This document shows positions 13,102 to 62,100 of a DNA stretch of 64,000 nt, piece by piece (positions within the stretch are counted from its first letter, which is position 1; each line of letters starts with the position of its first letter). The translations under genes and the position numbers were made by a program. The stretch comes from Haliotis rubra. Lineage: Eukaryota. The notes under the pieces were generated by a model that worked only from the letters and a program-made list of their open reading frames with translations, did no database searches and had not been told where the DNA came from. Where the stretch lies: positions 248,001 to 312,000 of the forward strand of contig NW_025767356.1 of assembly GCF_003918875.1 (NCBI RefSeq), read 5' to 3'.

Positions 13102-15027
13102 AAAACTCGACATTCCATTCTTCTTGCCACCCTGCAAGTTGGTCTTCAGCAGCGTCAAGCTGCGAGGAGACACATGGCACGATCTTCAGTATCTATGACT
13201 TGAGAACACGTCGAGGTGGACAGGAGGTGCAGGATGCCCTGAGAGACCACGGGGAACTTTGGATTCAGAACAACTGGACGGGTAAAACATTCTCTGTTGT
13301 TGTTCCAGACATATTCTCCTCTTGATAAGCTACTCCAACACAATTACGACATCTCTGTCACAGCATGGTACGTTTGCCGGGATGTTTAACTTCAGGAATA
13401 CAGATGCTCTGACATCATTCACTAACAAACCACCTGTTAAACTAGATACCAGATTCAATACCGGATCGACATGCTAGCACAACAATTACGTCCCTAATGC
13501 ACTATATACACTTGTATACAGTACCTGGCGGAATGCACGTTGACGAACTTGATTCCTGCTGATCGGGATACTCTGTGATTGTCATCGTAAGAATATACAG
13601 CTAAGAGTTCACACAATTATATTTCATCGAATGAAGCTAAATTATATTTTATTTCCAGGAATCATGTTTAGTTTCTGCAATGAGTATGATGCTAAGTAGT
13701 GTGTTGCCAAGGATGACAACATGATGCTGAATTCTGCTGTACAAGGGAGTGTTATATTCCATATTGTGTCTGATTACATGTATGAGGCTGAGTCACGTTT
13801 CAGTACCAGGAATGGCTATTTGGCTATAATAGGTTTTCCCACCAGGGATGATTATGATGACAAGTAATTTTTAACAGGGATGAATGTGGTGCTAATATAT
13901 GTCTCAGTACCAGGAAAGAGGACATGTATAATACTGCTTTGTTTTGTTACAAGATGCTAAATTATGTCTTTTAGCAGGACTGAACATCATGCTATGTGAT
14001 ACCGATGAATGGCGCAGATTAATGGTAAAAGGGATAAACTTGGTGCTGGGTAACACCTCATTACCAGGGATGAGACTTATGCCATATGATCATTTGTTAC
14101 CTTGGAATAAGTGTGATGATATATTGCGGTTTAATACGTAGGCATGATGCTGAACAATGTTTTCGTTTGAGCGATGAGCTTAATTCGAAATTAGCCTTTG
14201 AAGCCAGGAACTGCAAGGGATGAGTATGATGCTAAGGTATGCTTTATTACAACGATGCTATATATGTTTCTTTGTGTTCCAGACTGGTCAAATACAACAA
14301 ACGGATATGACTGTGCTACTATAGTCAACGGAAGCATTACCTTTACACAGACCAACTGCAGCGCGTTACGACACTACCTGTGTATTTCCAATGACAGTAC
14401 GTATACGTAAAGGGGCCTATAAAACATAAACAGCATTTTTCATGTCCAATTCTGATTGACTGTAATAGGATATATATAATTCTTCCCGCCATCCAGCTGT
14501 TTGCCTGTTTAAACATTGATACAGATAATATATGTTTAAGATATATAAAACTAAACTAAGTTCCTCTTCCAACTTCTATTTTTGTTTTTCTACAGCTTGG
14601 CGAGGAAATGGTAAGTTCTATTCGTTCAATAGGGAAGGTCTACTCATTTCAGATTGGGTTTGCACAGAAATATACATATGGATTTAATTTCATTGATGTC
14701 TGCAGTTGCTTCAACTAAGAGAATAAAGCTACACATGGTAAAGATAATAATGTTGAGTACGTTTGAACATTCATCACACCCATACGTCTTGAAGCATTGT
14801 GGACAGAGGGGTTGTAATTCAGTATGAACTTTATTTTTCCCAGGTTCACAATGTGTCCAAACTACAACCATGCCATGGATATTTGGTACGTATATACCGT
14901 TCCTTGTTACTAATGTTTCGAAGTATATGTATGCATTCCGTATATCCAGTGGCTTCGTCACGCTCGTCTAATACTAAAGGTCTAACCATTTGGTATGCCC
15001 CGTATACTATAAAATTCATCATCATCA

Positions 15028-15060
<33 letters not shown>

Positions 15061-16644
15061 TCAGCATCATCGCCACTGATATTCCCAGTAACTGTCAACA
15101 ACTGTTCTAAATTTCCCCACCTAAATATTGTTGTCGTAAGAGGCAATTGTTGGTCATCCTTGGTGACGTCACCAACATGTTTTTACGTTACAGCCGGAAC
15201 TAAATGAATTTTGTTCGTTTCAGAGTCTTCGACATTTAATCAAACATCCCCTACACCACCAGCTGCAGACACATCACCAAGTACAGTATAAGTCTTTCGT
15301 TGTCGTTTCTAGTCACATAACCGTCCGCCATTGAATTCGTCACAATAAATAATCACTATGTGTTCAAGTTGCAGTTACACCTACACGGCAATCAATCTTA
15401 ATGTACACCATTCTTCCGCTATGTGTTTCAGGCGTCACCATGGTGTGTGTCCTTGTAGGGATGTTGCTGTTTGCCATAGCCGTCATCAGTGTTGTCATCA
15501 TTAAGATGTGAGGATGATCTGCAGTTGTTCAATGTCTGATATTTCACGGTTCTCTCGCCATCTCTCTTCTGTCAGTGCCATATACGTGCTGTTGGTTTCC
15601 ATGGTAACGTCGTGCTGCTGCTTTCTAGGGTAACGTCTGGGACAGTGATTTCTGGCTGTTTTCACATATGATTCTAAGCCGTTCACTCTTTCTCACACAT
15701 TTGTATCGCATGCAGCAGTTATAATCACACATGGTTATTGTTCGTTTCTGGAACATATTCTCAAATCGTTCCATTGTCGTCACCAAGTTCGTAGATTTTA
15801 AGTTCCTCAATCTAATAACGTAATCCCCATGGTTATGATACTTGTAAATGCTAACAGTGGCTTTTGATACAATGTTGTGCTATCATGCTTCAGGAGAAAG
15901 AGAAGGTTTCTTCACAACACGTCTTCCATGAATGCAAGCTTAACCACAGTGTCTTCAGTACCGGAATATGATCCTGATCTGCAACCTGAAAGTCCGATGA
16001 TTTTCTACACCGGTTCCTCCTTCGGAGAGAATATGTACACCGCAGCAGTTGACCAAATACAAGCAGACTACTATAACATGATAGACGACTTCACCACGGA
16101 CCAGCAACCGTCAATGAGCCTCACGTCAAGCATCCCGACGACTGCAAGGGTGCAAGGTCCATGCGCATATCCATCTGATCGCAAGTGCGGAGAGTCATCA
16201 AATAGCTATTACGAGATACAGGGTGACAGGTCCACAAAGTGCACGGATTCCTCATGTTATAAAGGAGAAGGGCGTCAGTCCGTGCTGTCAACGTCTGGCT
16301 TGTACTCCGAAATAGACGACAACGGAACGGACACCGACATCAGAGGCGTTCAGCCGGATCACTACGCCTATTTACACGCATTGAACCGTGCCTCGGAAGC
16401 ACCATCTCTGACAAACAGCGGTATCTACGATATTCCGAATGATCCTGCTACCGACTCTCACGATAGAAGACAGTTGGTAAGTGGCGAGTACGCTGTTCCG
16501 TACGCCTGTTCAGATGGCCTCAACACAAACCTACATCTTCCAGAGTCGCTTGATGACAAGTGTACCCAACAATCTGCAAGGAGTTCCTTGTTATCACGTT
16601 GTTCGACGGAACCTAATCATTATGACACACCGAATGACCTTTAA
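13102..16644 (+). CDS. G3: CTLD-like type I receptor with long Tyr-rich tail (signal exon not identified)
   Basis: Exons 13102-13281 (FHSSCHPASWSSAASSCEE...LWIQ), 14283-14396 (YDCATI...TNCSALRHYLC), 14596-14610, 14844-14885, 15224-15280 (S/T/P stalk, weak donor), TM 15432-15507 and tail 15894-16644 (YYEI, YSEI, YAYL, YDIP, YAVP, YDTP). All phases are compatible. Confidence 0.85.
15016..15072. repeat. (ATC)n(GTC)n microsatellite
   Basis: Read directly from the sequence. Confidence 0.9.
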
Positions 16645-16736
16645 ATCGCCGTAAGCAGGAAGGTCAAACATTGCCTGAAACAGTATACTATTCCCTTATA
16701 CGCCTATGATTTGTTGGGTAATGTGTATAATTGAAA

Positions 16737-16871
16737 NNNNNNNNNNNNNNNNNNNNNNNNNNNNNNNNNNNNNNNNNNNNNNNNNNNNNNNNNNNNNNNN
16801 NNNNNNNNNNNNNNNNNNNNNNNNNNNNNNNNNNNNNNNNNNNNNNNNNNNNNNNNNNNNNNNNNNNNNNN
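16737..16871. other. Assembly gap
   Basis: Run of N. Confidence 1.
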
Positions 16872-18012
16872 AATCCATAATAATTTGTTTAAATCAAATC
16901 ATTTGGGACAAATGCCGGCATCTTGGTAGGATGAAAAGGATGTTCTTATTTTTCTACGAACAGTTATTGTATGCTTATAGACATGCTGACAATATGTTTG
17001 TACAGTAGGCCACGGCAGGGATTCCACCCCAGGTAACTCTCCTTAGTGGAACCCACCAAGCACTATCCCTAAAATGTGACGACTCGCTAATACTGCAGTC
17101 TTCTACGTTATCCAGAGTGGCAGAAGGGCCTCGCGGCGAACCTGGGTAGTCTCCGTCAAGAGATTTGTGAGTCCCAGAATCGTGCCAATTACATCATTGT
17201 CCAACTGGGCAAAAAACTCCATGACATAAATGATTTCGTGGGATGTGGCCAAAAGGGCATGGTCAGTATTGTTGGCCTGGTCGCGAATGTAAATAGTCTT
17301 GTACTTTTCACTTCTGATCAATGTGAGTAATTTGAGTCAGATACTGTGTCAGACACTGAACGGTCGTTTCCATTACACAGATATTACGGACGTCTTGGCT
17401 CACAGCATAGCCTTATTGATCATATGATGTCGTCCGTTTTTATAACATACTACTTCAATGTCCCTTTAATGGAAGTATTGTGACACAGGTTACTGATCAC
17501 GGAATCAGTTTGTATGATAACAGAATGGCCCCAAGTAATACACCGTAAACTTGTTTTCAGTTTCCATCATGTACATATCATTCTTTCGTGATTTGGTGAA
17601 AATAAAATCTGTGTAACTTCAGAAGGCTTCGTGATCGTATCTGTCTCCATCGATGTGTACAGATTCAAACTGTACATGCCACGCCCACACGTGGTGTCGT
17701 ATAGCCATAAAGCTTCTACACGTATTTACTGTGCACACGGGACGTGCAATAGCATCGCAGCAATCCAAGCAGAAACAGATAGTCGTGGGTATGTTTGTGT
17801 TCGTGGAATGTTCTTGCGATCTTACAGAGTACCTCCTATTTTGATGTGGCAGGCTCTCATTGGTTTGTGCAGTTCAGTACATAGTACCCGTATTGATGTT
17901 AATTTGGCGCTGGAGTCAGAGTTTTAACGCATTCTTATGTCCCAATGTTATGCTTAGGTGCTGATATGCAGGTCGGTGCACGTTTTACCTTCATATAGGT
18001 AACATCACCTAA

Positions 18013-23303: not shown

Positions 23304-26300
23304 ATGAAGATCGTTTGTGTCCCTCTGTGTGCAGCATCACTTGCTGTGTACGTGATGTTTCTTGGTTTCGACAATATGGACCAAGTACACGGTATGGTAT
23401 TATTCATTTATTTATCATAAATTTCTAAACTTCCCCAATGCTCACATTAACGAAGCCCGACAGTGTAATTTGACTCTTAAATAAGAGCAGACCGTTGGTT
23501 TCCTCCTATAAATGTTTTCGATTAAGTGGGCATCTAATTGATGAAACAACAAAATATATATTCGGAAACATATTCACGGTCGCCGAATTGGTAGCTCGTA
23601 ACACAGTTCGTGTCAGATGCTTTCAGAGGACCGATATACATGTACATATCATCCCAATTACACTGTGACCAAAATACACCAGTAAAGCTGATTATTTAAC
23701 ACAGATAAATAACCTGACGAAAAATCAAATGTCTCGACAATTCAACTTTTGTGACTTTATATAACATACAACATTAAAAGTCAATCTTTCGTCCCGTTGC
23801 TGTTGTTAAATATATGTTTCTTTCTTTTAGTATGACATCTTCCGACACTCGTTGCGAAACAACAACAAAAAATCCAACCGTCCTTTAGTTTATTCAGAAA
23901 TAATAGCTGTGCACGGATTATACTTACAAAATATATCCATCTCAAATTCAGTGTGGAAGTGAAACAGTACTCTTTCGGTAAAATCTCCAAACCATGTTGA
24001 GAAGACTCTAAATTCTCATACTTTCCAATACAAATATTTCCCTTTTATTTAACTTTGTATTCATTGTAATTGTTTTTGTTTCATTTCCCACGATTACGGT
24101 TGTTTGCGAGTGTATATTATACACGAATAAACACGGTTGCACTTTCGCGTTATTTCTCCATTTCCCTCTAAGCATTGTGACCTATGAAGAAGAGTTTTTA
24201 CAAAATTCAACAATCATCATGTTGTTTCTATAAGAATAGAAACACAGACAAACCGTTAAATATTCAATAAATTTGCCTATGTGATGTAAAACCATTCTTT
24301 GCTACAAACGTGGGGAGGTCTAGAGTTGGCTCAGTCACATTTGCGTACCTTGGATAAGAGCTGATTAGGAGTTTGAATCCCTGTTACCGCAATTATGTTT
24401 CTTGGTTTTTGAGCATCATACCCACGCTCGTTGGTTTCATGAGACTAGTAAATGCTCGTACCTGCATTACATTGCTTTGCCTGCCACGTTAGGCTACCAC
24501 GCCGTGATGCAACTAGAATACTGTTAAACCTGGACACTCACTCACACACAATGTCATCATATATATTTCAAATTAGATATCACAAGTTAAATATAACATA
24601 GTACTTTGCTCATGCACTGTTTCAGTTTGATGCTAGGGCTTGAACATTGTAACACATTTGTGCTTTTAAACGATTATTATGAATGCATATCACTTTGGTT
24701 CTTCAGCTTCCGGGCCACTCGGAGACAATTGTGTAAGTGTAAACTTCGCCATGGCTGAGAACGACTGCAAATATAGAAACAGATCATTATTCACCTTATC
24801 GGATTTGAAAACATCAAGAGGTGGACGATTTGTTCGAAATGTTACAACTATCCTCACGGAAATTTGGATACGAGGTGACGAGAATGGTAAATGAAACCAC
24901 TTATCCTGAACCTATGAGTGTTTTTTGTATTTTGTTTGGTCAAAATGTATCACTGATAATTACAACAACGACGAAAACCCAGGGACTACTTATTGAATGA
25001 TTATTGATTGAATTACTTGTTATATGCACAAACAATGTATGTTTACATCATAATCATATACATGTTTATATATCGTTGCAAACATTCAAAACACGGCGGA
25101 TACAATACAACGGAAAACCGAAACGTAAGCTTAAATATAAAAACAACAAGTGTTAATGCATGTGCTTTGTTAACCGATGCTTCTCTGGTTTGATTTGTTA
25201 TCATGATGTTAACCTAACTCATCTGTTTTACACGCCGCAGGTTCGTGCCAAACTTATCTCCGTTTGCCAACAAAGGGAAGTGCAAACAAGAGTAAGTGTC
25301 AATTGATTGCCTGTTCCAGACTCGATTATTTACAGACCGCCGCTAGAAGCTGGAATATTGCTGAGTGAGGCGTAAAACTCCACTCACTCACTCACTCATA
25401 ATCTATTGCAGCGAAGTTCATTGTANNNNNNNNNNNNNNNNNNNNNNNNNNNNNNNNNNNNNNNNNNNNNNNNNNNNNNNNNNNNNNNNNNNNNNNNNNN
25501 NNNNNNNNNNNNNNNNNNNNNNNNNNNNNNNNNNNNNNNNNNNNNNNNNNNNNNNNNNNNNNNNNNNNNNNNNNNNNNNNNNNNNNNNNNNNNNNNNNNN
25601 NNNNNNNNNATTGTATCATCTGAATTTATTTTACAACAGCTGACGAAGATCTGAAATTTCAAAGAGCCAACTGTGACGATCAGCATCACTACGTGTGTAT
25701 ACAGCATGCTCGTAAGCATTTTCATTCATCAACATCGCTTATATATCATTTCGTTTCTAATACGTATAATATTGACTACATTCACCATATGTTTACGTAC
25801 CAGTAGCAAAACTGCTAATATACAACCGGAAACTTTAACTATTGTTCCATTCTCTAATAAACCAGCTTCAATATTTCAATAATCCTATTTTGACATGTTT
25901 TTTTTGTACAACGAAATCAGATCTGGAGCCTCAGTACCATCCTGCTTGTTATGAGAAGACATCAGAGGTTACATTCGGTAATCTCCACCTATTTCCAACT
26001 ATTCATTGATATCATTACGTTATCGGTAACTGGCAAGAACTGGGTGCCAATGTCCTAAACAACCTTAGTTCAACAACAGTTGTAAACCTATGTTAACATA
26101 TGTTAGTCTGTGCTTGGGAATTCCTGTAATTAGATAGTTTTGTACAACGGTACAGAGGTAATGTGCATTTATACAATTGTTCTTCGTCGGACACAACTTG
26201 TTTGTTGTAAGTTCGTCGCCGCCTAACCCCCAAAGAAAGCATTCGCTTTGTGCAGATGCTTATACTACAAACTAATCACTGTGTTTGTCGTAATACTACC

Positions 26301-31149: not shown

Positions 31150-34100
31150 ATGGCCTGTCCACGACAAGTGGTCGCTTGCTGTTTGACATTGGCAATAATA
31201 ATGGCTAATGCCACACAAATTGAGAGTCGTTCAAACGCAGGTACGTAACGTTTTACTTCCATGAGATCTTGTCATTATGTTACGGACCTTTTAACCCCTA
31301 TAACTAAACATGAACTGACATACGGACATAGGACTGGCCTGACATAGACCTTGGCACATCAGACATTGATCTGCACTCCCAACACAATGGACACACCAGA
31401 CATTGATCTGCACTCCTAACACGGATGACTCACAAGACATTGATATACACTCCCAACAAGGAGGAATCACCAGACACTGATCTGCACTCCCAACACGGAG
31501 GATTCACCAGACACTGATCTGCACTCCCAACACGGAGGACTCACCAGACACTGATCTGCACTCCCATGTTACGAACAGGCGCGTTTCGTATTTTAGTATC
31601 GTAAATATTTCCACATATATCAAAAAAAATTGCCGGCCATATATATCTCCCACCATTTTTCGGCTGTTGTAGCATCGTCAAATAAAAGACCTCAGCAAGT
31701 AGCGAGCGTATGTTCGAATATCCAGACATGAGGTCAAAATAGAACAATGTTTTGTTAAGAAGGTCACATGCAACCAAAAAATCAAACATAATTAAAACAC
31801 AATTATCACTTCTTCATGACATATAATATGCATTGCTGATTATGAAAAAACAAATAAACAAAATTATAAGCGTATAATCGCAAATCAAAAGTGCAATATT
31901 TTGTACTTTGGGTTTACCTCCCTCGAAACGAAGCAGCCGGGATACCAAACCCAGTCAGAGCGGGTGGGTGTGCACTCAAGTGTAACGGCTGGTTCATTAG
32001 CAGATGCCGCCTCACAGCTCATTGTGTGTGTATATATAGAGATGTTGGGTTTTGTAAATACATGCTCATTTTTTGTGTATAACATTTTGCAATCAACAGA
32101 CATCATAACATGTAATGTGTTCAAGTATCACACCTGCCTGTCTGTGTAATTACATAATGTGACAGAGACCGAACTCGGGCCATAAATCAATGCGTTTTGT
32201 TTATGGTGTATAGCCTGATTGGTGTTAAGTTCAAATTGCATGTGGTCAGTGATCGCAGTTGTGTATTGATTATTGTCATTAGCAGACAGGCAGGCAGACA
32301 CACAGGTGTCAATAAAACAAGACATTGAGCTTTGTCTGTGACAGCGACATATCTATATCACAGTTAGAAATTGTGTCAACGCTAAATAATGACATTGCTT
32401 TTAAGTATCGAACTGAGAAAGTGACTCGGTAAGAAGAACGTGTGGTGAAATAGACAAATGAAATTATATAAACAGTTTATTTACTGTCATAACATATAAA
32501 AAGCTCGCGCCTGTGAGATATCAACAAAACATTAGGAAAATAGCTCACACCAAAGCCTTCACCGAGTATTCACCAGACAGCCCGCTTCTAAGTTGCGCGA
32601 ACCTATTTCACTGCGCACGTGCTATGAGCGCAGCCCAGCTGTTGAAACCCGTATTCCCCAGAAAAGTCTGGGGAAAATTAGTGAAACGTTTGAACTCCGA
32701 TTTCGCGCGGTTTTTTCATCGCGTTATTTTTCAACTTTATAAGTTGAATTTGCATTTTTGACGCTTTGTTTCGGTAAGTCCATACCGAAAGGTATCAGAA
32801 TCTGCAAAGTTGTGTTTTACGTTGCATGTGACCTTTAACATAACGCTAGGAATACTTCTTACCTTTTATTAAAAAAATATTCGTTATTTTTGTGACAATC
32901 TATTTGAGATTTGATTTTCCTTTTCCTATAACTACGCTTCATTATTTATTGGTCATTTCGATTTAGTGCATAACATTGTTCCACAATGAAATAGGCAGTC
33001 GTAAGCTTATTATCGAGTTTATGTTTAGATTGGCCGTGCATGGAGTCATACAGGAACAAATCGGCATACACAAGAGTTTTACATATTGTGCATGCTGGTT
33101 CTGAGGTTTGTGCGTCCGGGAACCCAAGAAATTGTTGATGTAACGTTTAGAGGGAAAGAGATGTAATTCTGACCTGACACACCTGTTATGTTTTCATGAA
33201 GGGAATAAGAGTTTCCACGTATCGTGCCACCCTGCACACTGGATCCTGGCTCAGATGACGTGCAAACAGAAACAGGGAGCCATGTTTGAGCTGGATGATC
33301 TGAAGAAAAGCTACGGCCTGCCCATCCTGCAAGCAGCGTTGCGAGATGTCGGGGAAATATGGATTAGCAGGAAGAAAACAGGTAATGGGCAGATCATTGA
33401 GCTTGAGCTTCCACTGTGTTTGAATGGACCGCGTTATCCAAATTTGGGACAGGGAAGCAACTCCTGATGGCTTGTATGTACTGGGTGCGGTGGATGTGTA
33501 CACTTTGTATATCCACTCCAGGGGTCGATCAAAATATTCTGTGGTTTGCTATAAGAGGCTTCTAAATCGTATCGGCGACTTATTTCCGCGTTCCTGAAAA
33601 GATGGACCACTGATTTGTTTCATTCGATATTGTATTGAAGTGATATAACCACAACATTGCTGGCTGTAAAGCAAGAAAGTACAAATAATTAAACAATGCA
33701 CGCAGATAGACATATAGTATGACCAGAAATTATTGAGAATTTTAGGAAAATGTTTAATTGGATTTCTAGTATAAACAACCTTGACCAGCTATCAAGTGCT
33801 TGGTTTCATTCAAGAGAGACAACTCTGTCAATCCTTTTTCATTAGTTTGTGAAGAGTTATCCCCCTTTGTTTACTTGCTAGCAGACGACATTTTCAGTGA
33901 TCCTCTGTATGGATGATTTAGAGAAGAGGAAGTTGATTTTAGAGTATTATAACAAGGACATCAGATCAGCTAAAGTAGAACAGGCATCCCTTTGCCCACT
34001 GTTTATCGTGTTTTGAAAAATATTGCAAATGGATTATGGCATTGAGCACCAGGGAGGCGCAGGTAGGCCCAGAAAATTGACTGTCGGTGACAGGAGGCGG

Positions 34101-43936: not shown

Positions 43937-46900
43937 ATGGCTTTGTCGTCCAGTCAACAATGGGTTGGCTCTATAATGACGGGTCTGATACTGGCGTGTG
44001 CGGAACACGGTAACTGTACTGTAAAACACTCCATGTCAGGTTGGTAAAGACATTTGTGTTACAATTTAATTAGAAGTGTAGAAAGTAATGCACTGTAGAG
44101 AGAGTAGAGTGTAATTTGATCAGATGTGTTGTCATCATTATCATTTTAACTTCCATCTCCATGGATGCTGAGCTTGATAACAGCTGCAACTTGTTGGTCA
44201 GACCCACACCTGATTATTTCCTGGCTACCTTACTTCAGTAATGTCAGATGTGACGGTATTGAGTCTTCTTAATAATCCAAAACACCACACTCCGGCACAG
44301 CGATGACTAACATAACATCACAGCCACAGGCTAATTTGCATATCACGTGACCGGACTTTTCTCTTGTTTGTTATCAAACGCGCATATTCATAATAATAAG
44401 AGACTGGGCTCACGAAAACTTTTTCGGCGCTCTCTTCATAATGTTTTACATTGTTACATAATATATAATCTTCCACAACTGCGACAGTTAGGTCTATGAC
44501 AGTACATATTTAGATATCAAACTGGTTGCATCGTTTGCTCTCCGTCGGCTTCGATGACTGCACGTGGAGCCGTACAACCTATGTAAACAAAGGATCTGTA
44601 CGCAAATCTAAATAGTGTTACATGTTTTGGGATGTTTTCTCAGCGAAACTTAACCATTCTATTAAAGATGTTTAGTTAGATGTGTAGACTCGTCAAAAAT
44701 AAAAGAGTAAAAGAAATCTGTACATTATATTGAATGGACATTGCAAGATGTGACGAATCGTCACATTTTTGTGGCCTGTGGCAGAGGTACTATGCTGGCT
44801 TGCCGCATGGAACTCTGGGTAGGTGAGTGCCAAAACACCTGTACATTCAATGTCACGTTTCAAATGTAAGTACAAGCAGGGCCTTATTTTACTTTTCAGA
44901 GAGTTCAGTGACCCCCTGCTACACGTTTCGCCACAACTCCAAACCGCAATCCAGGTATACAGTTCCTTGACCACTTGTAGACTATCACTGTGCCAAGGAA
45001 TCGGTAAAAGATCCACTTTATTGACATCAGTTCACCTCCATCAAAGTCATGGTTACACTATTCTTGTATCACGTCTATGCGGGTCATACATAACACTGTA
45101 CTATACACTGTACAATATCTGTTTTAAACTGATCTACTGAAGAATTGATGCAAAGCCAGTGTATTCCAGATTGACCTTATTGGCATGGATTTCTGATTAT
45201 GCAAATCTTTAAAGAGCATGTGTATTAATAGATTGTTACGTTATCAGAAGATATATTATTTAATAAAATTGACCCATCACGCATTGAAATATTTTACCTT
45301 CAGATAACTTGTCGTTTGAATCTTCCTGTGTCCCTCTGAACTGGAACTTGGCGGACACAGCCTGCAGAATGAAGGGCGCCGCTGTATTCACCCTCGTTGA
45401 TGTAGCAACATCACTTGGCGGCCATGCTTTGAAAAAAGCACAAGCGGATCATGGAACAATATGGATCGAAAATGATTTAAATGGTAATATCATGTCGCAG
45501 TTTCCACAAGACTTTGTCAATTGCGGCAAGATGCATGATAATTGAATGGAAACACACACATGCACACACATGCATACACATGCACACCTACATGCATGCA
45601 TACTATAAACGATAGATTTTTACAATAATTGTTTCAGTTTATTGCTATTGCGACTAAATGCCAAAGAAAGGTGACAAAACACGTCAATCGTGTAGATATT
45701 ATTTACGACATGGTTATCATTATTCGACAGGTACCTGCCTCGTAGCTGTCAGTGAGAGTCACACCTTCAACATGACAAGTTGTACAGAGCAGAACCATTA
45801 TCTCTGCACGTCGAACACAACAGGAAGCAGTGAGTACACACGAACCGATCTTATACCTCAGTTGTATATTTCAATACGTTAGAGAGTATAACCGAAGGAA
45901 TAGAATTACCCAACTAAAGTAATATCTCCCCTCTGGCAGTGAGAATTCATATTGACATTGGACATGCATGTACCAAAACTAGCACCGTTAGACGGAGCAT
46001 CTCTCCCGTCTGGTTTGATATTAAGTATCAAATAAACTGATGTGCAAAAGAAAGTACACAGGTTGTGTTTCTTCCAATAAGATAAAAATAACAAAACCTT
46101 TTGATGAAATGGAAAATGTATGTTGAAGCACACTGCAATACACGTGTTTTATCAGCAAAATGACATTGTAACAATAAACAGCGATGTGGTGATGACCACT
46201 GCAGACGGTTCCTACGATGCTGGAAGGTCAAGGCCATTCCACGCAGCGGTCGGTAGGCCCATACATGCCAGCAGGACGAAGTCGTCTTGTCACTGTGAAT
46301 CGGCTTACGCAATGACCCAATGATGTGGCTGCTGATGACGTCACCGTCAACATCCAGTTGCGTAGGTGAATAACCCGCAGAAAGCGATCCTCTTGGGGTG
46401 TTGTGACTCTGGAACGTCCACTTCTGGGTCGATCACACGTCTGGCCTGTCGTACTTAAACGGTTAAACAGCCGAATTATGGCTTGTCTTGTGCAACCCAA
46501 TGTCCTTGCAATATCGCTGTTGAAAGCACCCATTTGTGTCATTCCTTTGGCCCGTTCTCGTTGCGCCGACGTCAATCTTGGCATTTCCTCGTGAGATTTC
46601 TGTCAAGTGATTGTTCAGTCTTCACGACAAACAGGTTTTATACTCTCTGTCAGAAAAGTGCTGGTGCATGGGACAATAATCACAATTTTGCAAAAATTCG
46701 TAAAAAACACGTACAAATGTTTTTGGTTGCATTTTGGCAAATGAAACATGATGGTTGCGTTCTATACAATCAATGTTTTTCAATAATTTTATTAGTTAGA
46801 ACGCATATTTGGGTTTGCAACAACAATTACACCTGTGTACTTTCTTTTGCACGTCGGTTTACATGTATCAGTTTTAGCACATCAAAGTTGAGTGCACTGA

Positions 46901-48197
46901 AACTGTTACAATAACCAATGCAATGCAAACTGAAAACACGAATGTCTGTACATCGACAGATCCTGATTGGTATATACCGTGTCCAAACGACTCACCTGGC
47001 AAAGGTAATATTTTTCTGTTCATTCTGTAATGACATTTGCTATTGCATTGCGTGTCTTCACTGTTTTCTATATAAGATATGTACTATAAAATGTAAAATA
47101 ATGTCTCTTCGAATAGCATCAGTTCATCGCGTTGAGACACTGGTTAGGACTGGATAAGACTGACATCCATGATCTCTCATCGCTCAGAGATCCAGTGTAC
47201 AGTTTCTCATATGTTTACATAACAATCACCTCTGTGCTCAACTTCTTTTCCTACTTTGCGAATGTCTAAACATTTCTACCATAGCACATTAGGCCTGTTC
47301 CTTATTCTGTAGCTGTCATCACTGTTTTCAGTGATCCATTCATATAATATTCACAGCTTTTTTCCCCTGCACCGAAAACAATATGTTTCTAAGGATAATC
47401 GAGATTGTGTATCGTTTAGCATTTGGGTTCTATTTTTAAAACGAGCGAGGAAATGAACAGAGGGTTTATTTTGCATAACGGAAATATTTCAGTTTCATAC
47501 CGATGCACATATACGCTTGATGCGCTTTGTAAATTTTGCGAAAAACGGAATAGAATGTGTGAGGAAAAATATGGTATTCATTTTATACATACGCACATTA
47601 ATTATTGTCGATATATATTCAACTTCCTTGTGGGGAAGTGTTACTTCTCGGGAGGACATTGAAATCTAATGTTACGTCTTTTTTGCGAACTGTTACAAAT
47701 TAGTCACTGTGTAATTTTAGGTAAACACACTTTATCGGATATAACATGTCAAAATATAATACTCCATTTATTGCTTCTACAACACACAGGAACGATTGCG
47801 TCATGCCCACCGACATATGAAGGTGTCTTAATTATAAATATAATTATTGTTTCGTGAATTGAAATAATGCGAGAATGTAGCTCCATGTGTATTTTATGAT
47901 AGGCTTTCGTCAAGTGATTGATATCCTTGATGGGTATCATCAGCTGATATTTGCAGGCCTGCCTCAACATAACTGTTATGATTTTATATATCTATGTATA
48001 TTCTTTTTAAAAATGCATTATTTACAGATTGTCACACATGCCTCTGTATTATTTACCATGGTAGAGAACCCTTCTAAAATAATTATTACAATAACGTAAC
48101 AGTGAGTAAACCAATCATCTTTGTGTGACATGTTATATATTCAGGTATAACGCCTGCTTTTGTCGTCGCTGTGATGTCGGCCATCGTGTTATCATAA
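43937..48197 (+). CDS. G7: CTLD-like member whose TM exon ends in a stop (tailless, GPI-like or pseudogene)
   Basis: Signal exon 43937-44039 (alternative donor at 44009), 45304-45483, 45731-45829 (GTCLV...TSCTEQNHYLC), 46960-47004 (WYIPC), possible 47790-47822, then 48145-48197 GITPAFVVAVMSAIVLS*. Confidence 0.75.
46035..46859 (-). mobile_element. Internally deleted Tc1-like transposon in a G7 intron
   Basis: TIRs aac(t/c)ga(t/c)gtgcaaaagaaagtacacaggt with TA flanks. ORF 46228-46584 encodes only the HTH region (DRPRSGRSRVTT); no DDE domain. Confidence 0.9.
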
Positions 48198-50287: not shown

Positions 50288-53200
50288 ATGATGAACACAG
50301 TTGTAGCTGGTATAATCTGTGCTACTCTTGTAAGGCTTGAGTTGATACTGATGATATTGGGAGGTTCACATCCAGTGAGTACTCGCCGGGCAGGTACGTC
50401 GTGTACTCATTGCACGAATGGTGTGTTGTTTATGGTAGGATCTGCGTGTGCGTGCGTGTGTCCGTGTTGTGCGCTCCTGTCGTTATGTGAGCCACTTGCG
50501 ATTGCTATTTGTTAGAGGACTGCATAATGCTGACCATTTTGTTGTTTTAGAAAAAATATACTAGTACAGAAGAAATAGCTACATTTCAGTAAACTAAAAC
50601 ATCATTGCACCGCGTATTGGGTTCGATCGTGACATGATTGTGAACCATTTCCCCTCACCGCAATGTAATGTCTTGTCTAGAACCTAATGCTGACATTGGG
50701 CCGGTGGGGTAGCCTACTGGTTAAAGCGTTGGCTCGTCGCGCCGAAGACCCGGCTTCGAATTCCCACTTGGGTACATTGTGTGAAGCCCATTTCTGGTAT
50801 CCCCCGCCGTGATGTTGCTGGAATATTGCTAAAAGCGGCGTAAAACTAAACTCAGTCAGTCAGTAATGCTGACATTAATCACCCTGAACCCATATTGAAC
50901 GTTTACTGGCTAGTAGAGGCGGTTTAAGGACATTGACTGCAAAATGCAAATTTTCCCAAAGACTTTAACCACGTACTGTGCCACAACCTTTGGAACCGGC
51001 AAGATAATTATGATCATCTACACTGATGCCCATATTATCACATTTTGCTAGTACCGCATGGATCTGAAGACATGTCTTGATGGCTCCCACTATCCTCTAC
51101 GTGGTGTGTCATATTTAGGATTGCTGTATGATCCGAGGTCATTTTGAGGTCAGTGGTTTAGTATTGCCTCACCTGTGGTATCTTTAATATTAAATAGTAC
51201 GAATGATACACGTGCATTCATTTTCAACAAGGTTACATTTACTCTGGCAAAAGCTTCGTGTTGTGATGATATTAATGAGGAAGATGGGATTCGTTAATCA
51301 TGTAATCGTGTTGATCCCGTTAGACAAGATGGGGAGAAGGTGCCCGCTGAAACGTTATTTTGGTTTGGAGAACACTTGACTGGACTTCGCGTGTGTTTAT
51401 TGGATCATAAACACATCCTTTTATATGGCAGGTATCACACGTGTGACCGTGGAATGGCATTGCCTGACTTTATTTGATTACTAGCATGTAACTCAATTAG
51501 TAGTAAAGCTTTAAAAATATTTGCTGCGGAAAAGAAAGTGATATATCTTGATAATAAGCTTGTTTAATGTGTGATGTAGTCAATGACTGACTAAACATTG
51601 CCCTGAAGTATTTATAATTAACACCTGTTTGATGTTTCGATTCATTCTCAACATTGCTGACATAGGACAAAAATGATGCTGAAATATATAGTATAGATGT
51701 GGAACATTATGTGCATGTTATGCTATGCTAATCATTTCGTATTATTGATATCTGTACTACATAGAAGCGGCAGAACCGTCATAAACATATGCGAAGTCTA
51801 GTCAGTTGTTCACCTGAAATAATTCGGGAACGTATGGTATAAGTCAAAATAGGGAATTGCATCGGACATCATTTTTGTCACTATTGCATCAAATTTTGAA
51901 ATTTCCTCCACATGTCTATCATAAAACTTCTTGAAGGCTTTTGTTGAGGCCTTGATCAAACAACTTCTGAGCAAGAGTGGCATGAGGCCCTATGAAATCC
52001 TGATAAAATGAGCACCTCCTTGATTGCCTCTCAAAATTTGTGAAATGTAAACATCAAAGGCTGGAGCTGTTGAAATATTGCTCGACATGAAAGGGAACTT
52101 GACTATTGGAATCATCCCTGTTGTCGCACAGCCTTGTGTAGATTTTTTGTCACTCTGAATCTTTATGCGTAGATCTAAACATGAAACAGTTGAGGCAGTC
52201 TCACTTGTCTCCTTAATTTCAAGTTTAGGTCGGTAAATCAGTGAAAGGCAATTAGCTGTTTGAGGGTTATTGAACGATATTAAATCATCGATGTACCGGA
52301 AGCTTATTAAGTTAAACTTCTTGGCCAACTTACCATGTTTTGATTCATATGCATACAGAACCAGATCCGCAAGGAGGGGGGCACAATTGGTTCCCATGGA
52401 GATGCCTGCGTCTTGGCGAAATGTTTTACCCCCACATTTCACAAAGATGTTATCAATGAGAAAGTTCAGCATTTCACATATTGTTTTCTCGGTAAACTTG
52501 AAATGACATTTGCTTTCATTTTTTTACACATTGTCCTGAACCTCTGAAGATAGATATGTAGGTATATCTTTGTTCACCACGTTTGTTTACAAAGCCCCAT
52601 GAATCAAGGAATGGAGTTTTTCCTTGATTGTTATGTTTGTGTACTTGTTTTTTGTATGCTAACATCTGTTTGAAATCTGTGTTTCCATGATGTCTTTACA
52701 GTATTGCCCAGTGTCCATGGGTCCTGCTTCCCCGCTAGTGCAGCGATGGCGAAGAAAAACTGTGAGGAGAGAAGCGGGGTCTTATTCAGCATTGATGACC
52801 TGAAGATGGCCCATGCTCTACGTATCATGGAATTAGCGATACAAGACTTGGGAGACATATGGATGTTTACGAATAGTGCAAGCACTTTAGAGAGAAGTAC
52901 GCTTATCAAATGTTCATGATTTTAATGTTTAAATAAAATCGTTAGTATATTTGATAAAGGGTAAATATATGTTTGAGTTTTACAAAGACCAGTGAACGTT
53001 TGACATTATACGTTCGTCATAGATTGTAAATGACCGTTATTAACGGTTCATTGTTACGTTTATTACAGATCTGGACGTGGCCGGAACGTGCCTTACTGAC
53101 GTCAACAACAACCGTAAGTAGATCACATTAATGTCACATACAGAAGGACAACGCATAATCATTTGGTCAGGTTCATATCATCAATATCTTAACATAAACC

Positions 53201-56200
53201 ACTAATATTTACATAAGAGCAAACACGTGGCGATAAGGCAATGATACATGTAGCTGCCACAGTCATGATGGTTTACTGGCTGTATACGGCAATGTGTACA
53301 TTCACTCAGATAGGCAATCTCCATCAGTTGTTTACCTACATGTATGCATTATGCATCTATTCGTTCTTGTTGGTGGAAAGAGACACTTGCAAGGAGATAT
53401 ATCTGAATGAATCGGTGGAAATCAGTTATGTAACCAGGTTGCCGTATACATGTCAGCATGTCCTGCTCTATCGGTATGACCCTCAAGCCACAACATTGTT
53501 ACAGCAAGGGGTGTGTAAAGAGTAAATGGATGGCAGCTCACATAACGGCGATGATGTGCGTATGCAGCATCACGACAGACTAATCTTTCTATGTTCAACG
53601 TTCCTTCACACTGTTCCAGGTTCCTGTCCTAAGGGCGTCAACTGTGGAGACTTACATGGATGCTGCAAGTCTACGGTGACAGGTTTGTATATATAGTAAT
53701 GTCATAAAATATATGCACTGCTGATATTTGGGGATGGATATTCCTCCACTTTTCTTGAAACACACATATGTATATAAACTGTGTAGACGGGTGGACTAGG
53801 CGAGTGTTCAGGGCTTTCGTTCGCCAAGCTGTTGAATCGGGTTCGATTGCAACAGATGATTCAACTTGCAAATCACGCTTCTGTTAATGAACACTATCTG
53901 GGGGATGGGAATCTGAAAATGTTATACATGTAAAATTCATTAATACGCTGTTTTGCACATGTATGTGTTTTCATAGAAGCTGTCATTTCATGAAATTGTA
54001 TCAGTATTGCATTCTATAACTCGATATACTAAATGTAATTGATTAATCCACAAACTATTTGTTTTCAAAGATTCGACAGGTGTTAATACCTTCACAAGAA
54101 TCAGCTGTGAGGAACTGCGTCATTATGTCTGTAAAATAAACAGCAGTAAGTATACATTATTTGAAATGATAAATATATTTGTGTTAGTGCTACATATTGA
54201 TTGATCAGCTACAATGGGTGTGTGGCTGGGGGTGTCCAGGTCGCCACAACGTCACCGTTAACTGTGCGCGTTTGCTTCTCACAGGCACGAAACAAACTCA
54301 AGTTGCTGGTTCGAATCACAGTTTGCCCCCCCTTCCTTATTTGACAAAAATGTACCTAACATTGTGTAATCTCCCTAAGGGACATCACAGACCCCCGAAT
54401 TGCCCCTTTTTTCATCATTCCTACCTCTATAAGGTCGTTGGGGTAGCATAGTGGTTAAAGCGTTCACTCGTCACATCGAAGGCCCGGGTTTGATTCCGCA
54501 CATGAGTACAATGTGTGAATCCCATTTCTGGTGTCCCCCGCCGTGATATTGCTGAAATATTGCTAAAAGCGGCGTAATGCTAAACTCACTCACTCCTACC
54601 TCTATATCCAACTGTCATCTACCTCTATATCCAACTGTCATACTGTCATCCTTTTAGCCGATTCACTAATTTCATATCCGTTTTGTTAATTTATTTCACT
54701 CACCTGTAATTGTTTGTAAATATTCACGACCCAGGATACGTTGACATGCAATCAGATACGTCCCCCGGCCTGACCGCATAATCTGTGATACCGACTCTAC
54801 CGGGCCTAGTCCAGTATTCCTACTCTACTTTGGTATGCTGAACATAATACATTATGATTATATTGGGCTCCGCATTCTCATCGAATTTGTGATTTGGAAC
54901 ATTTAACGCATTCCTCTGCATTTTCAGCTGGTCAAGATTTTCGCGGGAACAGTAAGTATGGTCGGAAAGCACACATTCGCGCCGCGAACTCATAAACAGA
55001 TCAGAAATTGTTTGTCATGTTAAGGTGGTATCCATACTCAAGAGGAAATTATAATAATACTGAGAAGTGAATCCTTTGTAAATACAGAAGTAAATCATAT
55101 CAACAGTTACATTTCCCTCTGCTACTACTATGTCGTTGACGTCTACGTTAACGTTTTACAGTACACCGTTCAACGGCAAAAGATCCTGTGTATACTGGAG
55201 TTGTGACCAACAGAAATATCCGGAATCCCCTTTTGTATTTCACCAGAATAAGTATCTGGACTCAGTTTATGAATTTTTACATTTACTGATCATACACCTG
55301 AGGAAATCACTTGTTATTATAATGTGTACTGAATTATGTTGTTTGTAATCAACATGTATTGCTCGTTGTAGGAACCAAAGAAATGTACATTCCATGCATG
55401 AACGACACATCTTCATCAAGTGGGTAAAGCTTCAGACTACATTTGGTTCTAATCTAAACTTGTATCCGACTAGTATGTCAACGTATTATGACATCGGTGT
55501 ACGGAGTGATGATTGTTTTTGTGACCACACGTTGGAAGGGTGTTAACGTTTATATATTGCTATTCCATAATATAACCCTTTTCCACTGCCACAGGGATGG
55601 ATTGTACTAGACCCACTGTATCTTGAGCGCGTGTCCGGGCTTATTCGTTGTTTGGTAACAAATGCTCTGTGTCGACTTTGAAGATTCAACACATATTATC
55701 ACCATTTATAACCACTGTATATATTATCTGCTCTTAAGTCGCACAATTCTTCAACAAAAAATTCCATATACTAGTGACTTGTTCAACAATTCTGATCTCG
55801 TCTTTGTTCCAGCTATTGCTATCATCATTGGCGTAGTCGTGACGGTGACGGTGGTGGCGGGCTTCATTACATGCTGCTGCTGTCTAATCAAGTGGTACGA
55901 ATGTGATCCTATCGTTTCTAACATACATTCTTCCATTTTGCCGATTGACCGTTTTAACGGGTTTGGTAGATAATGGAAATATATGGACAAGATATAAGAT
56001 TGTAATTATACTACATGTTAATGACGTTTCACACAAACCTTCCTTTATGCCGCTGCAGCGTCACCAAGCCGATCAAGTATGCAGTGCGAGTTCAGAGTGC
56101 GCTGTACCACAAGAACAACCCTGGACCGGGAGTAGCCGGGGGTCCTCAGACCAAACCACAAGACATGTTAGCTACACACGTGGTCAACCTTAACAACATG

Positions 56201-56203
56201 TGA
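50288..56203 (+). CDS. G8: CTLD-like type I receptor, Cys-rich juxtamembrane region, short tail
   Basis: Exons 50288-50393 (signal), 52702-52896, 53069-53113, 53620-53682, 54071-54145 (ISCEELRHYVCK), 54928-54951, 55372-55419 (MYIPC), TM 55813-55894 (...FITCCCCLIK) and tail 56059-56203. Confidence 0.85.
50698..50863 (+). mobile_element. SINE family A, young copy
   Basis: 13-bp TSD taatgctgacatt. Confidence 0.9.
51850..52630 (-). mobile_element. Penelope-like retroelement reverse transcriptase fragment
   Basis: ORF 51990-52472 has GISMGTNCAPLLADL, FRYIDD and FPFMSSNI..APAFDVYISQ; degenerate. Boundaries approximate. Confidence 0.8.
54432..54593 (+). mobile_element. SINE family A
   Basis: 13-bp TSD tcctacctctata. 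Confidence 0.85.
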
Positions 56204-58803: not shown

Positions 58804-58866
58804 TCTCTCTCTCTCTGTCTCTCTCGTTCTCGTTCTCTCTCGCTCTCCCTCCTTCCCTCCCTCACG

Positions 58867-58897
<31 letters not shown>

Positions 58898-58913
58898 TAT
58901 TTATAATGTCAAT

Positions 58914-58950
<37 letters not shown>
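58804..58950. repeat. (CT)n/(CA)n microsatellites just upstream of the G9 start
   Basis: Read directly from the sequence. Confidence 0.9.
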
Positions 58951-58953
<3 letters not shown>

Positions 58954-59109
58954 TTACATGCACAATCACATGCTGAGACAGTTCTCACAAATCTATAAAC
59001 CCTTGACACTGGTGTATCATTACTCAATTGTGTCAGGCGTGTTACAACCCGGAAGCTGGGTCAGCACTCTGACAGTCTCTAGCTCCCCTTTGGTCACGAC
59101 ACAATAGCG

Positions 59110-62100
59110 ATGGCCCGTGTACGCCCATCTCTCGCTGTTATAATACTGCTGATACTGACGTTGGATAATTCTAGAGTAACCCACAGTCAACATTCAGGTG
59201 AGTGACTGTTTTACTACAGATATAGACCATTCTTCAGCTCTAATCTCCTTCATGTCTTTTATCCACAAGATCTATACTGCACCTGACAACCGAAAGTCAA
59301 TGAGAAGCATTATCTTTGCATGATGATATGTGTGTTAAGAGGAGGTAATATAATATGATCTTTACATGCATTTTGTTTTCATGTCCGAGATATGAAGTAT
59401 CTAGGTTTATATAATATGTAAGGCAGTTGACCTCAGCAAGACCAACCAACATGAAAGTATACCAGGTTTTCACGCATCTCTCGTAACTATAGATGTGATG
59501 ACGCTATAGAACCAATATATTGTCACCCACTAAATACTATACAGAGTTCTCATTATCTCATGTCAACCCTTAGAGATGTTATCTCAATTACTTACTTCTT
59601 TTTGTAGTAAATAAGACATTCCATGGATCCTGTTTCCCTGCAAACGCAACTGTGGCTGAGATAAACTGCAAGAAGGAAGGTGGAGATTTATTCAGCCTTG
59701 TGGATTTGAAGTTGGCCTATGGTCTTGTCGTGTTGGAGTCGGCAATACCTGATGTGGGGGCGATATGGATGAATGGCAACACAGGCAGTAATGTTTTTAC
59801 GTATCATTATCTCATACTTGTGAACGGAAGCAAGCTTGTGTGACCGATTACGTCTAAATTGTTTGATTCTAAAATAATTCCTCTGTTATTTGTAGCTTAC
59901 ACATGTTAAATATGAATATTACACAAGCATATAGAGTGCGCTTATTACTTTAGGGACGACAGAAGATGACCCGTTGTCATTTCATTATCATCAACAAGAT
60001 AGGGGCAGCATTGTAAATACAAGTAAATTGACGTTTCCGTGACCTGATAGACAGATCACCAGCAGTGGTTCGATCTATGGCCGCATACCAAAGTACACAC
60101 ACGCACGTACACGCGTACATGCATGCACCTTCACATACACACACCTACACACATGCACGAACACACATGCATGCATATCGTTTTCTTAGTGCATTTGTCT
60201 TCAATCCTCATTTCACCTCACCATATGAACAGACATGAAATATACAGGTGAAAACATCAACCATACGACGTTTATTGTATACGAAATACATGCATCTCAC
60301 GCTTCGCACGCCCTTCTGCTGTTTTTCTGTTCTTCAGTAGTTAGTGAGTCTGACGTCTATCAGGAACTTTACAATACCTGCCGATATTACATCGACATCT
60401 TCGTGTTCTGTATTCGCAGCTACTTATCCACTCAATGTCAAGCATAGTCATAATGTCCCATATAAGTGCACCGCCTCATTTATATGTTCGACAAAAGATA
60501 TATCACTTGCAACAATTCAAATTATTATGTGATGTTATACAGCAATCCAGTACACTGTTGGCATCATAAAATGCCCAATACAATGATCTCAATACATTGT
60601 GCAAAATGATGTTGCAGATCCCTGTCAAAGTACCACAGATGGAGCCAGTATCAAGACAAACATTTGTTGTGTGGCTGTTAGTGAGTACACGCTTGTGGCA
60701 CATTACCACTGTATACATGTACCTGCTGTTCTTTGTGTATCATACAGCACAGATCCTCAATAACATCTGACCTCAAGGTCATCTCTACTGATGACATGTG
60801 TAGCATGATATCTGGCGTTTTTGGAGGATGTGCATTGTATTGTGCCAAGAGGTAGATACCGTTGATACAACATTTATCAGTGGTGAGAGAGTGAGCAGTG
60901 AAGTGGTTGGTTTATGCTGAACTTAACAGTGGAAATGTACTACATGCTTCTCGGTAGACTTATGTATGTAACTGACTGCCCCACATCAGCTGTTACTCTT
61001 CAAGCAACCCGATATGTCGCTTATTGCATGTGTGACATCAGCATAGTCTTGTTTGATTCAAACAGATTTTATCTTGCTTTTGTCAGATTCAAATGGCACT
61101 AACATATTCCAGACCGCCAACTGTGGAGACCAGTATCACTATGTTTGCAACTTAAACACTAGTAAGTGGAACAGCGTTCATTTGTAATTTGCAACAGCAT
61201 GATTTAACTTCATTTTGGTGTACAATATCATAACGTTATGTAAACATTGTTTAAATTTCACTTGTAACAGGAAATTGTATTCATTATATGATAAAACTAA
61301 ATGGAACGTAACTATATTAATTGGTCATTACGTTCATCTTGATATGACATGTGCACATCACTTCAAACATCCAAACTAGGTGGTCACTATGTCAGATCTA
61401 GAATCATATGAACAACATTAGTGTCCAGTTGAAATCTAGATGCTCACAAGATCTACATAGAAGCAACGTCAGATTATCCGAAATATAGTTGAATTTGTTG
61501 TGTGTATCTTCATCTTGTACATTGTTACCCACAGCTTCCACGGAAGAGCGAAATGGTAAGTATATATCATGCAAGAAGACTAAAGAATCAAGCATGCGAT
61601 AACTCGCCTTACGGTTCGAGATGTGGAGCAGTATGAAACACAGATGTACAGCCATGTTTATTTTCTTTCTGTGCCACAGGAACACATCTCTACATACCTT
61701 GCTTGAACAACATACCTTCAACAGGTAAGCTGATGAAATGTTTCCTATCCCGGTATGTAATGTCACAGTCACTAAAACATGTCACATCCATGTCACAGGA
61801 AAGGCCGGAAATGGCATGTCAAATAAATATGTCAGAAATCTGCACTATTCGTCAACATCGTCCCTGCCTTAATCTATGAATTCTCTGTACATGTGTAATA
61901 CTTCCCTTTAATGAGAATTGGTAGGTTACATTTTGTCACTTTTGCAGACATTGCTGGCATCATTGCGGGGACGTGCCTGACTATAACGCTTGTCGTGGCT
62001 TTGATAACTGTCTGGTGCTACTGCAGTCGGTAAGGGAATGGTCTTATTTGTGATGATTTTCTTAAACTGATATATACTTGACAAAAATAGTTACGGATAT

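Follow-up and report, generated by a model that had tools for sequence, protein, structure and literature searches.

Six related exons in a 64,000-nucleotide stretch of the blacklip abalone Haliotis rubra (RefSeq assembly GCF_003918875.1, contig NW_025767356.1, positions 248,001 to 312,000 of the forward strand; hereafter the window, to which all coordinates refer) appear to encode the N-terminal halves of six divergent, loop-less C-type lectin-like domains (CTLDs) in five tandem type I receptor genes. We give this reading a probability of about three in four. In it, each exon codes for strand beta1, helices alpha1 and alpha2, and strand beta2 up to W-[IM]. RefSeq models, together with placement by homology, assign the six exons to five neighbouring Haliotis rubra genes on the same strand.

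The exons were first noticed in an inspection of the bare sequence, here called the original prediction, which held that those at 13102, 24707, 33202, 45304 and 59608 are exactly 180 nt long and that a sixth at 52702 aligns over the same length. Both statements are correct. In all six stretches the frame that begins at exon base 3 is the sole open frame on the plus strand, the other two carrying stops, and each 180-nt exon has two split-codon bases at its start and one spare base at its end, i.e., it is of phase 1-1 and a multiple of three. AG directly precedes all six exons and GT follows five of them; at 52702 the first 180 nt are followed by GC, and the RefSeq exon ends at 52896 (195 nt), its first 180 nt aligning with the other five. 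The six 59-residue translations form a gapless alignment with invariant C8, A16, C20, F28, D32 and W53, which are the residues previously numbered C9, A17, C21, F29, D33 and W54, shifted by one for the split codon. Identity is otherwise low, as had been described (24–44% of the other exon translations to the first sequence). An all-vs-all BLASTP comparison of every open piece in the window linked exactly these six (E 1e-7 to 8e-21) and, as a second set, six short pieces, one downstream of each 180-nt exon. Likewise, a hidden Markov model (HMM) of the six exons, run against the window in six frames, returned the same six pieces only (E 2.6e-32 to 2.7e-29; next 0.46), and an HMM of the downstream set returned its six copies only (next-best E 0.088). 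Copies of both sets lie on the plus strand and alternate along the window. The downstream exons, called exons b in distinction to the 180-nt exons a, are all multiples of three with a phase that fits after the 180-nt exon, and all six carry the motif F-x4-C-x4-HY[VL]C. A later exon with HY[VL]C had been expected and does exist, but with a spacing one residue longer than the F-x3-C-x4-HY(V/L)C proposed at that time. All 12 core exons are open, possess consensus splice sites and match in phase.

At the level of fold and remote homology, profile searches and predicted models support the classification of the encoded domain as a CTLD. A profile of 18 domain segments (A2), searched against all PDB sequences, gave 33 matches at E≤10, and all of them are named CTLD proteins except MALT1 (3k0w) and a type II antifreeze protein. 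E-values were 1e-7 for PLA2R, 8.9e-5 for DEC-205, 3.8e-4 for agglucetin beta-2 and 4.3e-3 for NKR-P1B, with weaker matches to CD94, REG4, the mannose receptor, CD69 and tetranectin. In the A2 alignments A-x3-C falls on alpha1 and W-I on beta2, while beta5 carries the last C-x4-xY-x-C. In the HMMER alignments C1 (alpha1) and C4 (beta5), as well as C2 (beta3) and C3, are in register with CTLD cysteines and would be expected to pair in this way. At the WIGL position the tryptophan is invariant and followed by isoleucine or methionine, with GL replaced by QN, RG, SR, EN, FT or NG; the translations thus bear out the strings WIQN, WIRG, WISR, WIEN, WMFT and WMNG that had been read there. The 59-residue exon profile alone matches four non-Haliotis proteins with 4–13 Lectin_C domains. 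Three further matches of the exon profile (P0016, P0017 and P0024) are bacterial repeat proteins and were judged spurious sums of weak repeats. Scoring against Pfam Lectin_C (PF00059), which had been suggested as a check, gave recurrent matches to 11 of 20 full proteins scanned, at 13.7–20.6 bits (best P0002, 20.6), but the gathering threshold of 22.6 bits was never reached.

Predicted structures point in the same direction. For the AlphaFold2 model of P0004:62-192 (gene 1; predicted local distance difference test, pLDDT, 74.6), CTLDs account for each of the 50 matches listed by Foldseek and each of the 50 listed by VIA, the best with Z 10.1 over 92 residues at a root-mean-square deviation of 3.4. 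The model of P0007:28-135, a cassette-less H. cracherodii relative of gene 5 (pLDDT 78.6), likewise has CTLDs as all 50 listed VIA matches; the best (Z 8.0) lays residues 3-87 on tetranectin 57-181, with about 40 target residues unmatched. Weak Foldseek matches of this model comprise CTLDs proper and the 80-90-residue lectin-like domains of poxvirus A33/A35. Both models give the order beta1-alpha1-alpha2-beta2-beta3-beta4-beta5 in a double-loop alpha/beta fold. The atypical CTLD of the original prediction is therefore upheld: PDB profile matches are almost all CTLDs, the listed top-50 neighbours of the predicted folds are all CTLDs, and the structure prediction, named beforehand as a test, did not yield a non-CTLD fold.

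EPN, QPD and WND are absent from every ectodomain of the family, as had been stated; in P0004 the strings EPN and QPD occur only in the cytoplasmic tail. The WND position, 5 to 3 residues before C3, reads F-x-x in 6 of 6 cases (FTQ, FQR, FLD, FNM, FTR, FQT). Directly after W-I the PDB targets insert 31–33 residues, which correspond to the long loop region, and the distance from the beta2 tryptophan to C4 is 26–52 residues in most members as compared to about 62 in the Pfam model; the entire domain spans 85–100 residues in several members. Thus, the motifs are missing because the long loop that carries them is deleted or has given way to short Cys-rich inserts, rather than through substitutions in place. 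In addition, the family possesses an extra conserved cysteine on beta1 and another one in the stalk. CTLDs without the long loop are called 'compact', with Link modules and bacterial CTLDs as examples, and Link modules are thought to derive from a canonical CTLD via long-loop deletion (PMC9630629, section 2.1). The abalone family would be an independent case of loop loss that still matches canonical CTLDs by sequence.

A number of observations weigh against this reading. The Pfam scan of single exons gave no match even at E≤10, and no family member attains the Lectin_C gathering score. Foldseek returned nothing at E≤0.001 for the P0007 model, the shortest form. The models are of moderate confidence (pLDDT about 52-53 across the loop) and rest on shallow alignments of 18-23 rows. 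H. rubra gene 4 domain 2 has a loop of canonical length (69 residues from W to C4) and is not 'compact', and units without a cassette hold an odd number of cysteines (5). Binding of Ca2+ or glycans via a non-canonical site may be compatible with the sequence. The cassette and skipped isoforms described below rest on RefSeq predictions.

Four RefSeq proteins of Haliotis rubra, all annotated "uncharacterized", map exactly onto the window. XP_046547028.1 (P0004; LOC124257084) covers 13102-13281 and 14283-14396, XP_046547006.1 (P0005; LOC124257071) covers 24707-24886 and 25640-25711, and XP_046547026.1 (P0003; LOC124257083) covers 33202-33381; XP_046547008.1 (P0002; LOC124257073) comprises 45304(partial)-45483, 45731-45829 and 46960-47004, followed by 52702-52896 and the rest of that unit. 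In this mapping 13102-13281, 24707-24886 and 33202-33381 are 180-nt exons bounded by ag and gt; consequently, the NCBI annotation independently chose the same 180-nt boundaries. For gene 5 (59608) no exact database protein was found, and its exons were placed via homology to H. cracherodii P0007/P0031 together with splice sites. The features, including the transmembrane (TM) segments, are as follows, with their basis at the end of each line.

13102..13281 (+): gene 1 (LOC124257084, P0004/P0030), CTLD exon a, beta1 + alpha1 + alpha2 + beta2, ending WIQN; exact XP_046547028.1 map
14283..14396 (+): gene 1, CTLD exon b, 114 nt, with C2, F-x4-C3 and HYLC (C4); RefSeq map, HMM
14844..16644 (+): gene 1, stalk exons 14844-14885 and 15224-15280, TM 15432-15507, Tyr-rich tail coding 15894-16641, stop 16642-16644; RefSeq map
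23304..23391 (+): gene 2 (LOC124257071, P0005/P0039), leader exon; RefSeq map
24707..24886 (+): gene 2, CTLD exon a, 180 nt, WIRG; RefSeq map, translation
25241..25291 (+): gene 2, mini-exon, 51 nt, phase 1-1, at the long-loop position, supplies C2; RefSeq map
25640..25711 (+): gene 2, CTLD exon b, 72 nt, FQRANC..HYVC, 30 nt after gap 25426-25609; RefSeq map, HMM
31150..31240 (+): gene 3 (LOC124257083, P0038/P0003), leader exon, signal peptide; RefSeq map
33202..33381 (+): gene 3, CTLD exon a, 180 nt, WISR; RefSeq map, translation
35239..35316 (+): gene 3, mini-exon, 78 nt, at the long-loop position, GCWRV..., supplies C2; RefSeq map
36000..36071 (+): gene 3, CTLD exon b, 72 nt, FLDTNC..HYVC, present in X1 (P0038), skipped in X2 (P0003); HMM, isoform comparison
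36631..38398 (+): gene 3, spacer exon, stalk 36962-37015 (HYVPC), TM 37676-37754, tail coding 38074-38395, stop; RefSeq map
45304..45483 (+): gene 4 (LOC124257073, P0002), domain 1, CTLD exon a, 180 nt, WIEN; RefSeq map, translation
45731..45829 (+): gene 4, domain 1, CTLD exon b, 99 nt, with C2, FNMTSC and HYLC; RefSeq map, HMM
46960..47004 (+): gene 4, domain 1 stalk exon, 45 nt, DWYIPC, spliced by RefSeq to the 52702 exon; RefSeq map, same architecture in H. rufescens P0001/L001
52702..52896 (+): gene 4, domain 2, CTLD exon a, WMFT, 195 nt in RefSeq; RefSeq map, translation
53069..53113 (+): gene 4, domain 2, mini-exon, 45 nt, at the long-loop position; RefSeq map, boundaries set by hand
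53620..53682 (+): gene 4, Cys-rich mini-exon, 63 nt, SCPKGVNCGDLHGCCKSTVT; RefSeq map
54071..54145 (+): gene 4, domain 2, CTLD exon b, 75 nt, FTRISC..HYVC; RefSeq map, HMM
54929..56203 (+): gene 4, spacer, stalk MYIPC ~55373-55419, TM ~55814-55893, short tail ~56058-56203, boundaries within 1-2 nt; RefSeq map
59110..59197 (+): gene 5 (orthologue-like P0007/P0031), leader exon, signal peptide, ending CAG before gtgagt; homology, splice sites
59608..59787 (+): gene 5, CTLD exon a, 180 nt, WMNG; translation
60618..60680 (+): gene 5, candidate cassette exon, 63 nt, PCQSTTDGASIKTNICCVAV, between gcag and gtgagt, phase 1-1; homology to H. cracherodii isoform insert
61087..61161 (+): gene 5, CTLD exon b, 75 nt, FQTANC..HYVC; HMM
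61535..62680 (+): gene 5, spacer mini-exon 61535-61555, 45-nt stalk 61680-61724 (LYIPC), TM ~61950-62030, tail ~62299-62680; homology, splice sites

Neither assembly gap touches any CTLD exon. The gap at 16737-16871 starts 93 nt past the stop codon of gene 1 (16642-16644; last coding base 16641) and thus sits in the 3' untranslated region or in intergenic DNA. The gap at 25426-25609 is intronic; exon 25241-25291 ends 134 nt upstream of it and exon 25640-25711 starts 30 nt downstream. RefSeq joins these two exons, and since both are of phase 1-1, splicing rather than the length of the gap fixes the frame. The gap may conceal a further exon. The RefSeq models of gene 2 stop without a TM helix, and a tail-like open reading frame (ORF) resembling P0019 of H. 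cracherodii is found at 26971-27198; of the gene models, that of gene 2 is the least certain. A signal peptide is missing from the first RefSeq exon of gene 1 (9517-9709, +) and also from P0008, a relative in H. asinina; the true 5' end of gene 1 is doubtful.

The domain had originally been described as the product of two exons. Both exons are real, but four of the six units add phase 1-1 mini-exons between the constant exons a and b (one each in genes 2, 3 and 5, two in domain 2 of gene 4). These mini-exons supply the canonical C2 and extra cysteines; in gene 1 and in domain 1 of gene 4, C2 lies inside the longer last exon. The gene 5 candidate at 60618-60680 is homologous to a 19-residue insert of H. 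cracherodii, NACRNNTAGNKGQICCVVI, which is the sole difference between isoforms X1 (P0031) and X2 (P0007) of that species; the gene 5 candidate resembles the 63-nt exon of gene 4 as well. Among the RefSeq isoforms, exon b at 36000-36071 is included in P0038 and skipped in P0003, and H. rufescens X3 and X4 leave out the Y-I-P-C exon of the stalk. As every such exon is a multiple of three and of phase 1-1, inclusion or skipping would not shift the frame. The only sequencing runs found (runs X1 and X2) resemble DNA contigs of low coverage: introns and repeats are covered, the 52702 exon has a depth of zero, and splice joints are absent.

Read by inspection, the proteins are type I single-pass membrane proteins with an N-terminal leader and a C-terminal TM helix followed by basic residues and a tail; the leader exons show n, h and c regions. 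Their layout is a signal peptide, one CTLD or two, a short stalk that bears the conserved cysteine of Y-[IV]-P-C, the TM helix and a tyrosine-bearing tail. The tails of gene 4 (56058-56200, +) and gene 5 (62299-62420, +) have the juxtamembrane motif K-P-[IK]-[KR]-Y-A-V-R-[VA]-[EQ]-S-A-[ILM]-Y-H in common, which is kept in relatives of three other species (P0010, P0012, P0035). Within the gene 5 tail, S-V-Y-S-H-L fits the consensus of the immunoreceptor tyrosine-based inhibitory motif (ITIM). The Tyr-rich tail of gene 1 (15868-16641, +) has a paralogue at 20229-20984 (+; 32% identity over 143 residues, E 4e-9) that belongs to a neighbouring gene without a CTLD exon.

How many genes are present depends on the unit at 52702. 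Six separate single-CTLD genes could be envisioned if this unit had its own leader, and at about 50288-50393 there is indeed an ATG that comes with a hydrophobic segment and a donor of fitting phase. We consider this unlikely. XP_046547008.1 splices the stalk exon 46960-47004 to 52702, so that RefSeq joins the 45304 and 52702 units into one two-CTLD gene, and the models of H. rufescens (XP_046358695.2) and its H. cracherodii counterpart describe this same protein, with two CTLDs behind one signal peptide. Furthermore, a copy of a high-copy repeat is found about 290 nt past the candidate leader. A different question is whether the exons belong to working receptors at all. Decaying or mis-annotated pseudogene fragments would fit the gene 2 models, which run across an assembly gap and end before any TM helix, the gene 4 model without start and leader, the signal-peptide-less first exon of gene 1 and the intact transposase in an intron of gene 3, and the DNA-like runs offer no RNA support. 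However, the uniformly open core exons with their consensus splice sites and matching phases, a ratio of nonsynonymous to synonymous divergence (dN/dS) of 0.26 at a synonymous divergence of 0.81 against H. rufescens, and the existence in four Haliotis species of full-length relatives that have a signal peptide, a TM helix and a tail make decay very unlikely.

Two further alternatives concern the nature of the domain itself. Its short length in several members, and the poxvirus A33/A35 CTLDs among the weak Foldseek matches of the shortest form (E 0.03-0.2), would agree with a relative of Link modules or other compact CTLDs, or with a convergent alpha/beta fold, in place of a derivative of canonical CTLDs. 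Yet no Link, CD44 or TSG-6 chain occurs among the PDB profile matches at E≤10 or the listed top-50 fold matches, no Pfam match to Xlink (PF00193) was obtained at E≤1 to 10, and the sequence matches are canonical CTLDs in which W-I, C1-C4 and C2-C3 line up with the abalone domain, which renders this origin highly improbable. The least probable explanation in our view is that of ordinary Ca2+-dependent carbohydrate-recognition domains that merely look divergent. True lectins (MBP, SP-A, SP-D, DC-SIGNR, langerin) are among the fold and profile matches, but the long loop is absent or replaced, no ectodomain carries EPN or QPD, and F-x-x takes the place of WND in every unit.

If the six exons are indeed halves of divergent, loop-less CTLDs, the following scenario can be envisioned. 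The domains would descend from a canonical CTLD, with the long loop region deleted or replaced by 3-45 residues that lack Ca2+ ligands. To judge from sequence, classical Ca2+-dependent sugar binding would not be possible, because the loop site is lost and W-N-D on beta4 is F-x-x. Most likely, a protein or another non-classical ligand would instead be bound in a Ca2+-independent manner via the beta2-beta3-beta4 face. This face would be modular, the constant 180-nt exon and the constant C-terminal exon of 72-114 nt flanking optional phase 1-1 mini-exons. Splicing may therefore alter both this face and a potential disulfide of the stalk, and divergence among the paralogues may vary the face as well. 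The cysteines of beta1 and stalk might engage in disulfide pairing or dimerisation, and the tyrosine-bearing tails would presumably signal.

One might speculate further that abalones independently re-invented the 'compact' CTLD through loss of the long-loop exon and then turned the vacated position into a splice-selectable slot, filled by mini-exons of 45-78 nt that encode Cys-rich loops differing between paralogues. We regard this idea as tentative and rather doubtful. If true, it would represent a splicing-based diversification of an invertebrate recognition receptor, and if the cassettes are alternatively spliced in vivo, the cluster would be a tractable model of binding-loop swapping in a receptor of innate-immune type. 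The family would also be a second metazoan case, besides the vertebrate Link modules, of a CTLD that shed its long loop; its sequence signal suffices for tracing it to canonical CTLDs, and the exon structure suggests a route for the loss of the loop and the reuse of its site. Surveys of mollusc CTLDs based on Pfam or SMART miss the entire cluster, as its members score below threshold and are annotated 'uncharacterized protein'.

Compared to canonical CTLDs such as those of PLA2R, DEC-205, snaclecs, tetranectin and SP-A, the abalone domain has the same predicted fold and element order. It shares A-x3-C of alpha1 (C1) in register with C4 on beta5, W-[IM] at the WIGL position and, in most members, C2 and C3. 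In contrast to them, it lacks EPN, QPD and WND, has lost the GL of WIGL, is 31–33 residues shorter at the loop, carries the extra cysteines of beta1 and stalk, and remains below the Pfam threshold throughout. Link/PTR modules and the bacterial intimin/invasin CTLDs (PMC9630629, section 2.1) are alike in having a CTLD fold without the long loop. However, Link modules are matched neither by sequence nor by profile, the loss in the mollusc lineage would be independent, and the loop position in abalones holds optional mini-exons. Poxvirus A33 has a CTLD-like domain of about 80-90 residues and a membrane-proximal cysteine that forms an intermolecular disulfide. The match to this type II viral protein is weak and structural, and we claim no homology.

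The group V receptors of natural killer (NK) and myeloid cells (NKR-P1, CD94, CD69, NKp80, LLT1) are, like the proposed abalone receptors, signalling membrane receptors in tandem clusters, with CTLDs that are Ca2+-independent and do not bind sugar, and they are found among the structural and profile matches of the abalone family. They are, however, type II proteins that kept the long loop, and they are not the best sequence matches, whereas the abalone proteins are of type I and lost the loop. The likeness to NK receptors in the original prediction can thus be kept as an analogy of use only, given the type I orientation and PLA2R, DEC-205 and snaclecs as nearest sequence matches.

The exon profile, searched against 1.84 billion representative proteins, gave 25 matches at E≤0.001, of which 17 are family members. 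Those with a stated source are all 'uncharacterized protein' entries of Haliotis rubra, H. rufescens, H. cracherodii and H. asinina; three short members among the 17 carry none. In these representative libraries, in which few other vetigastropods may be included, the family was found in Haliotis only, and its true taxonomic range could be wider. A word-index protein search with P0012 likewise returned six close Haliotis relatives only, and literature searches found no description of the abalone family. In H. rufescens L001, the exons matching three units of the window are 180, 180 and 174 nt long and of the same phase. With orthology assumed on the basis of position and best tblastn match in L001, the three exon pairs show 66-71% protein identity, with dS 0.81, dN 0.21 and dN/dS 0.26. 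The exons are under purifying selection, yet fast-changing. Pervasive positive selection on the 180-nt exons was considered as well and is unsupported at this average dN/dS.

Besides the receptor genes, the window contains several repeats and mobile elements. An intact 287-residue ORF for a Tc1/mariner-type transposase (34017-34877, +; DDE_3 9.7e-17, HTH_Tnp_Tc3_2 4.1e-8) sits in gene 3, in the intron that separates the 180-nt exon from the mini-exon. Between the leader and the 180-nt exon of the same gene there is a tandem array of about 37-nt period (31294-31677), which is open in several frames of either strand, and low-complexity CA/TC-rich DNA with His-Thr and Ser-Leu ORFs (58548-58995) lies just upstream of the gene 5 leader. 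One short interspersed repeat occurs in both orientations at 4764-5347, 18003-18168, 37356-37552, 42404-42545, 50680-50859 and 54430-54614; DNA contigs pile up on two of its copies with summed depths in the millions, and one copy is the repeat that follows the candidate leader (50288-50393) at a distance of about 290 nt. Finally, two inverted-repeat pairs at 12039-12456 and 39948-40755, 80-100% identical when translated, probably mark transposon ends.

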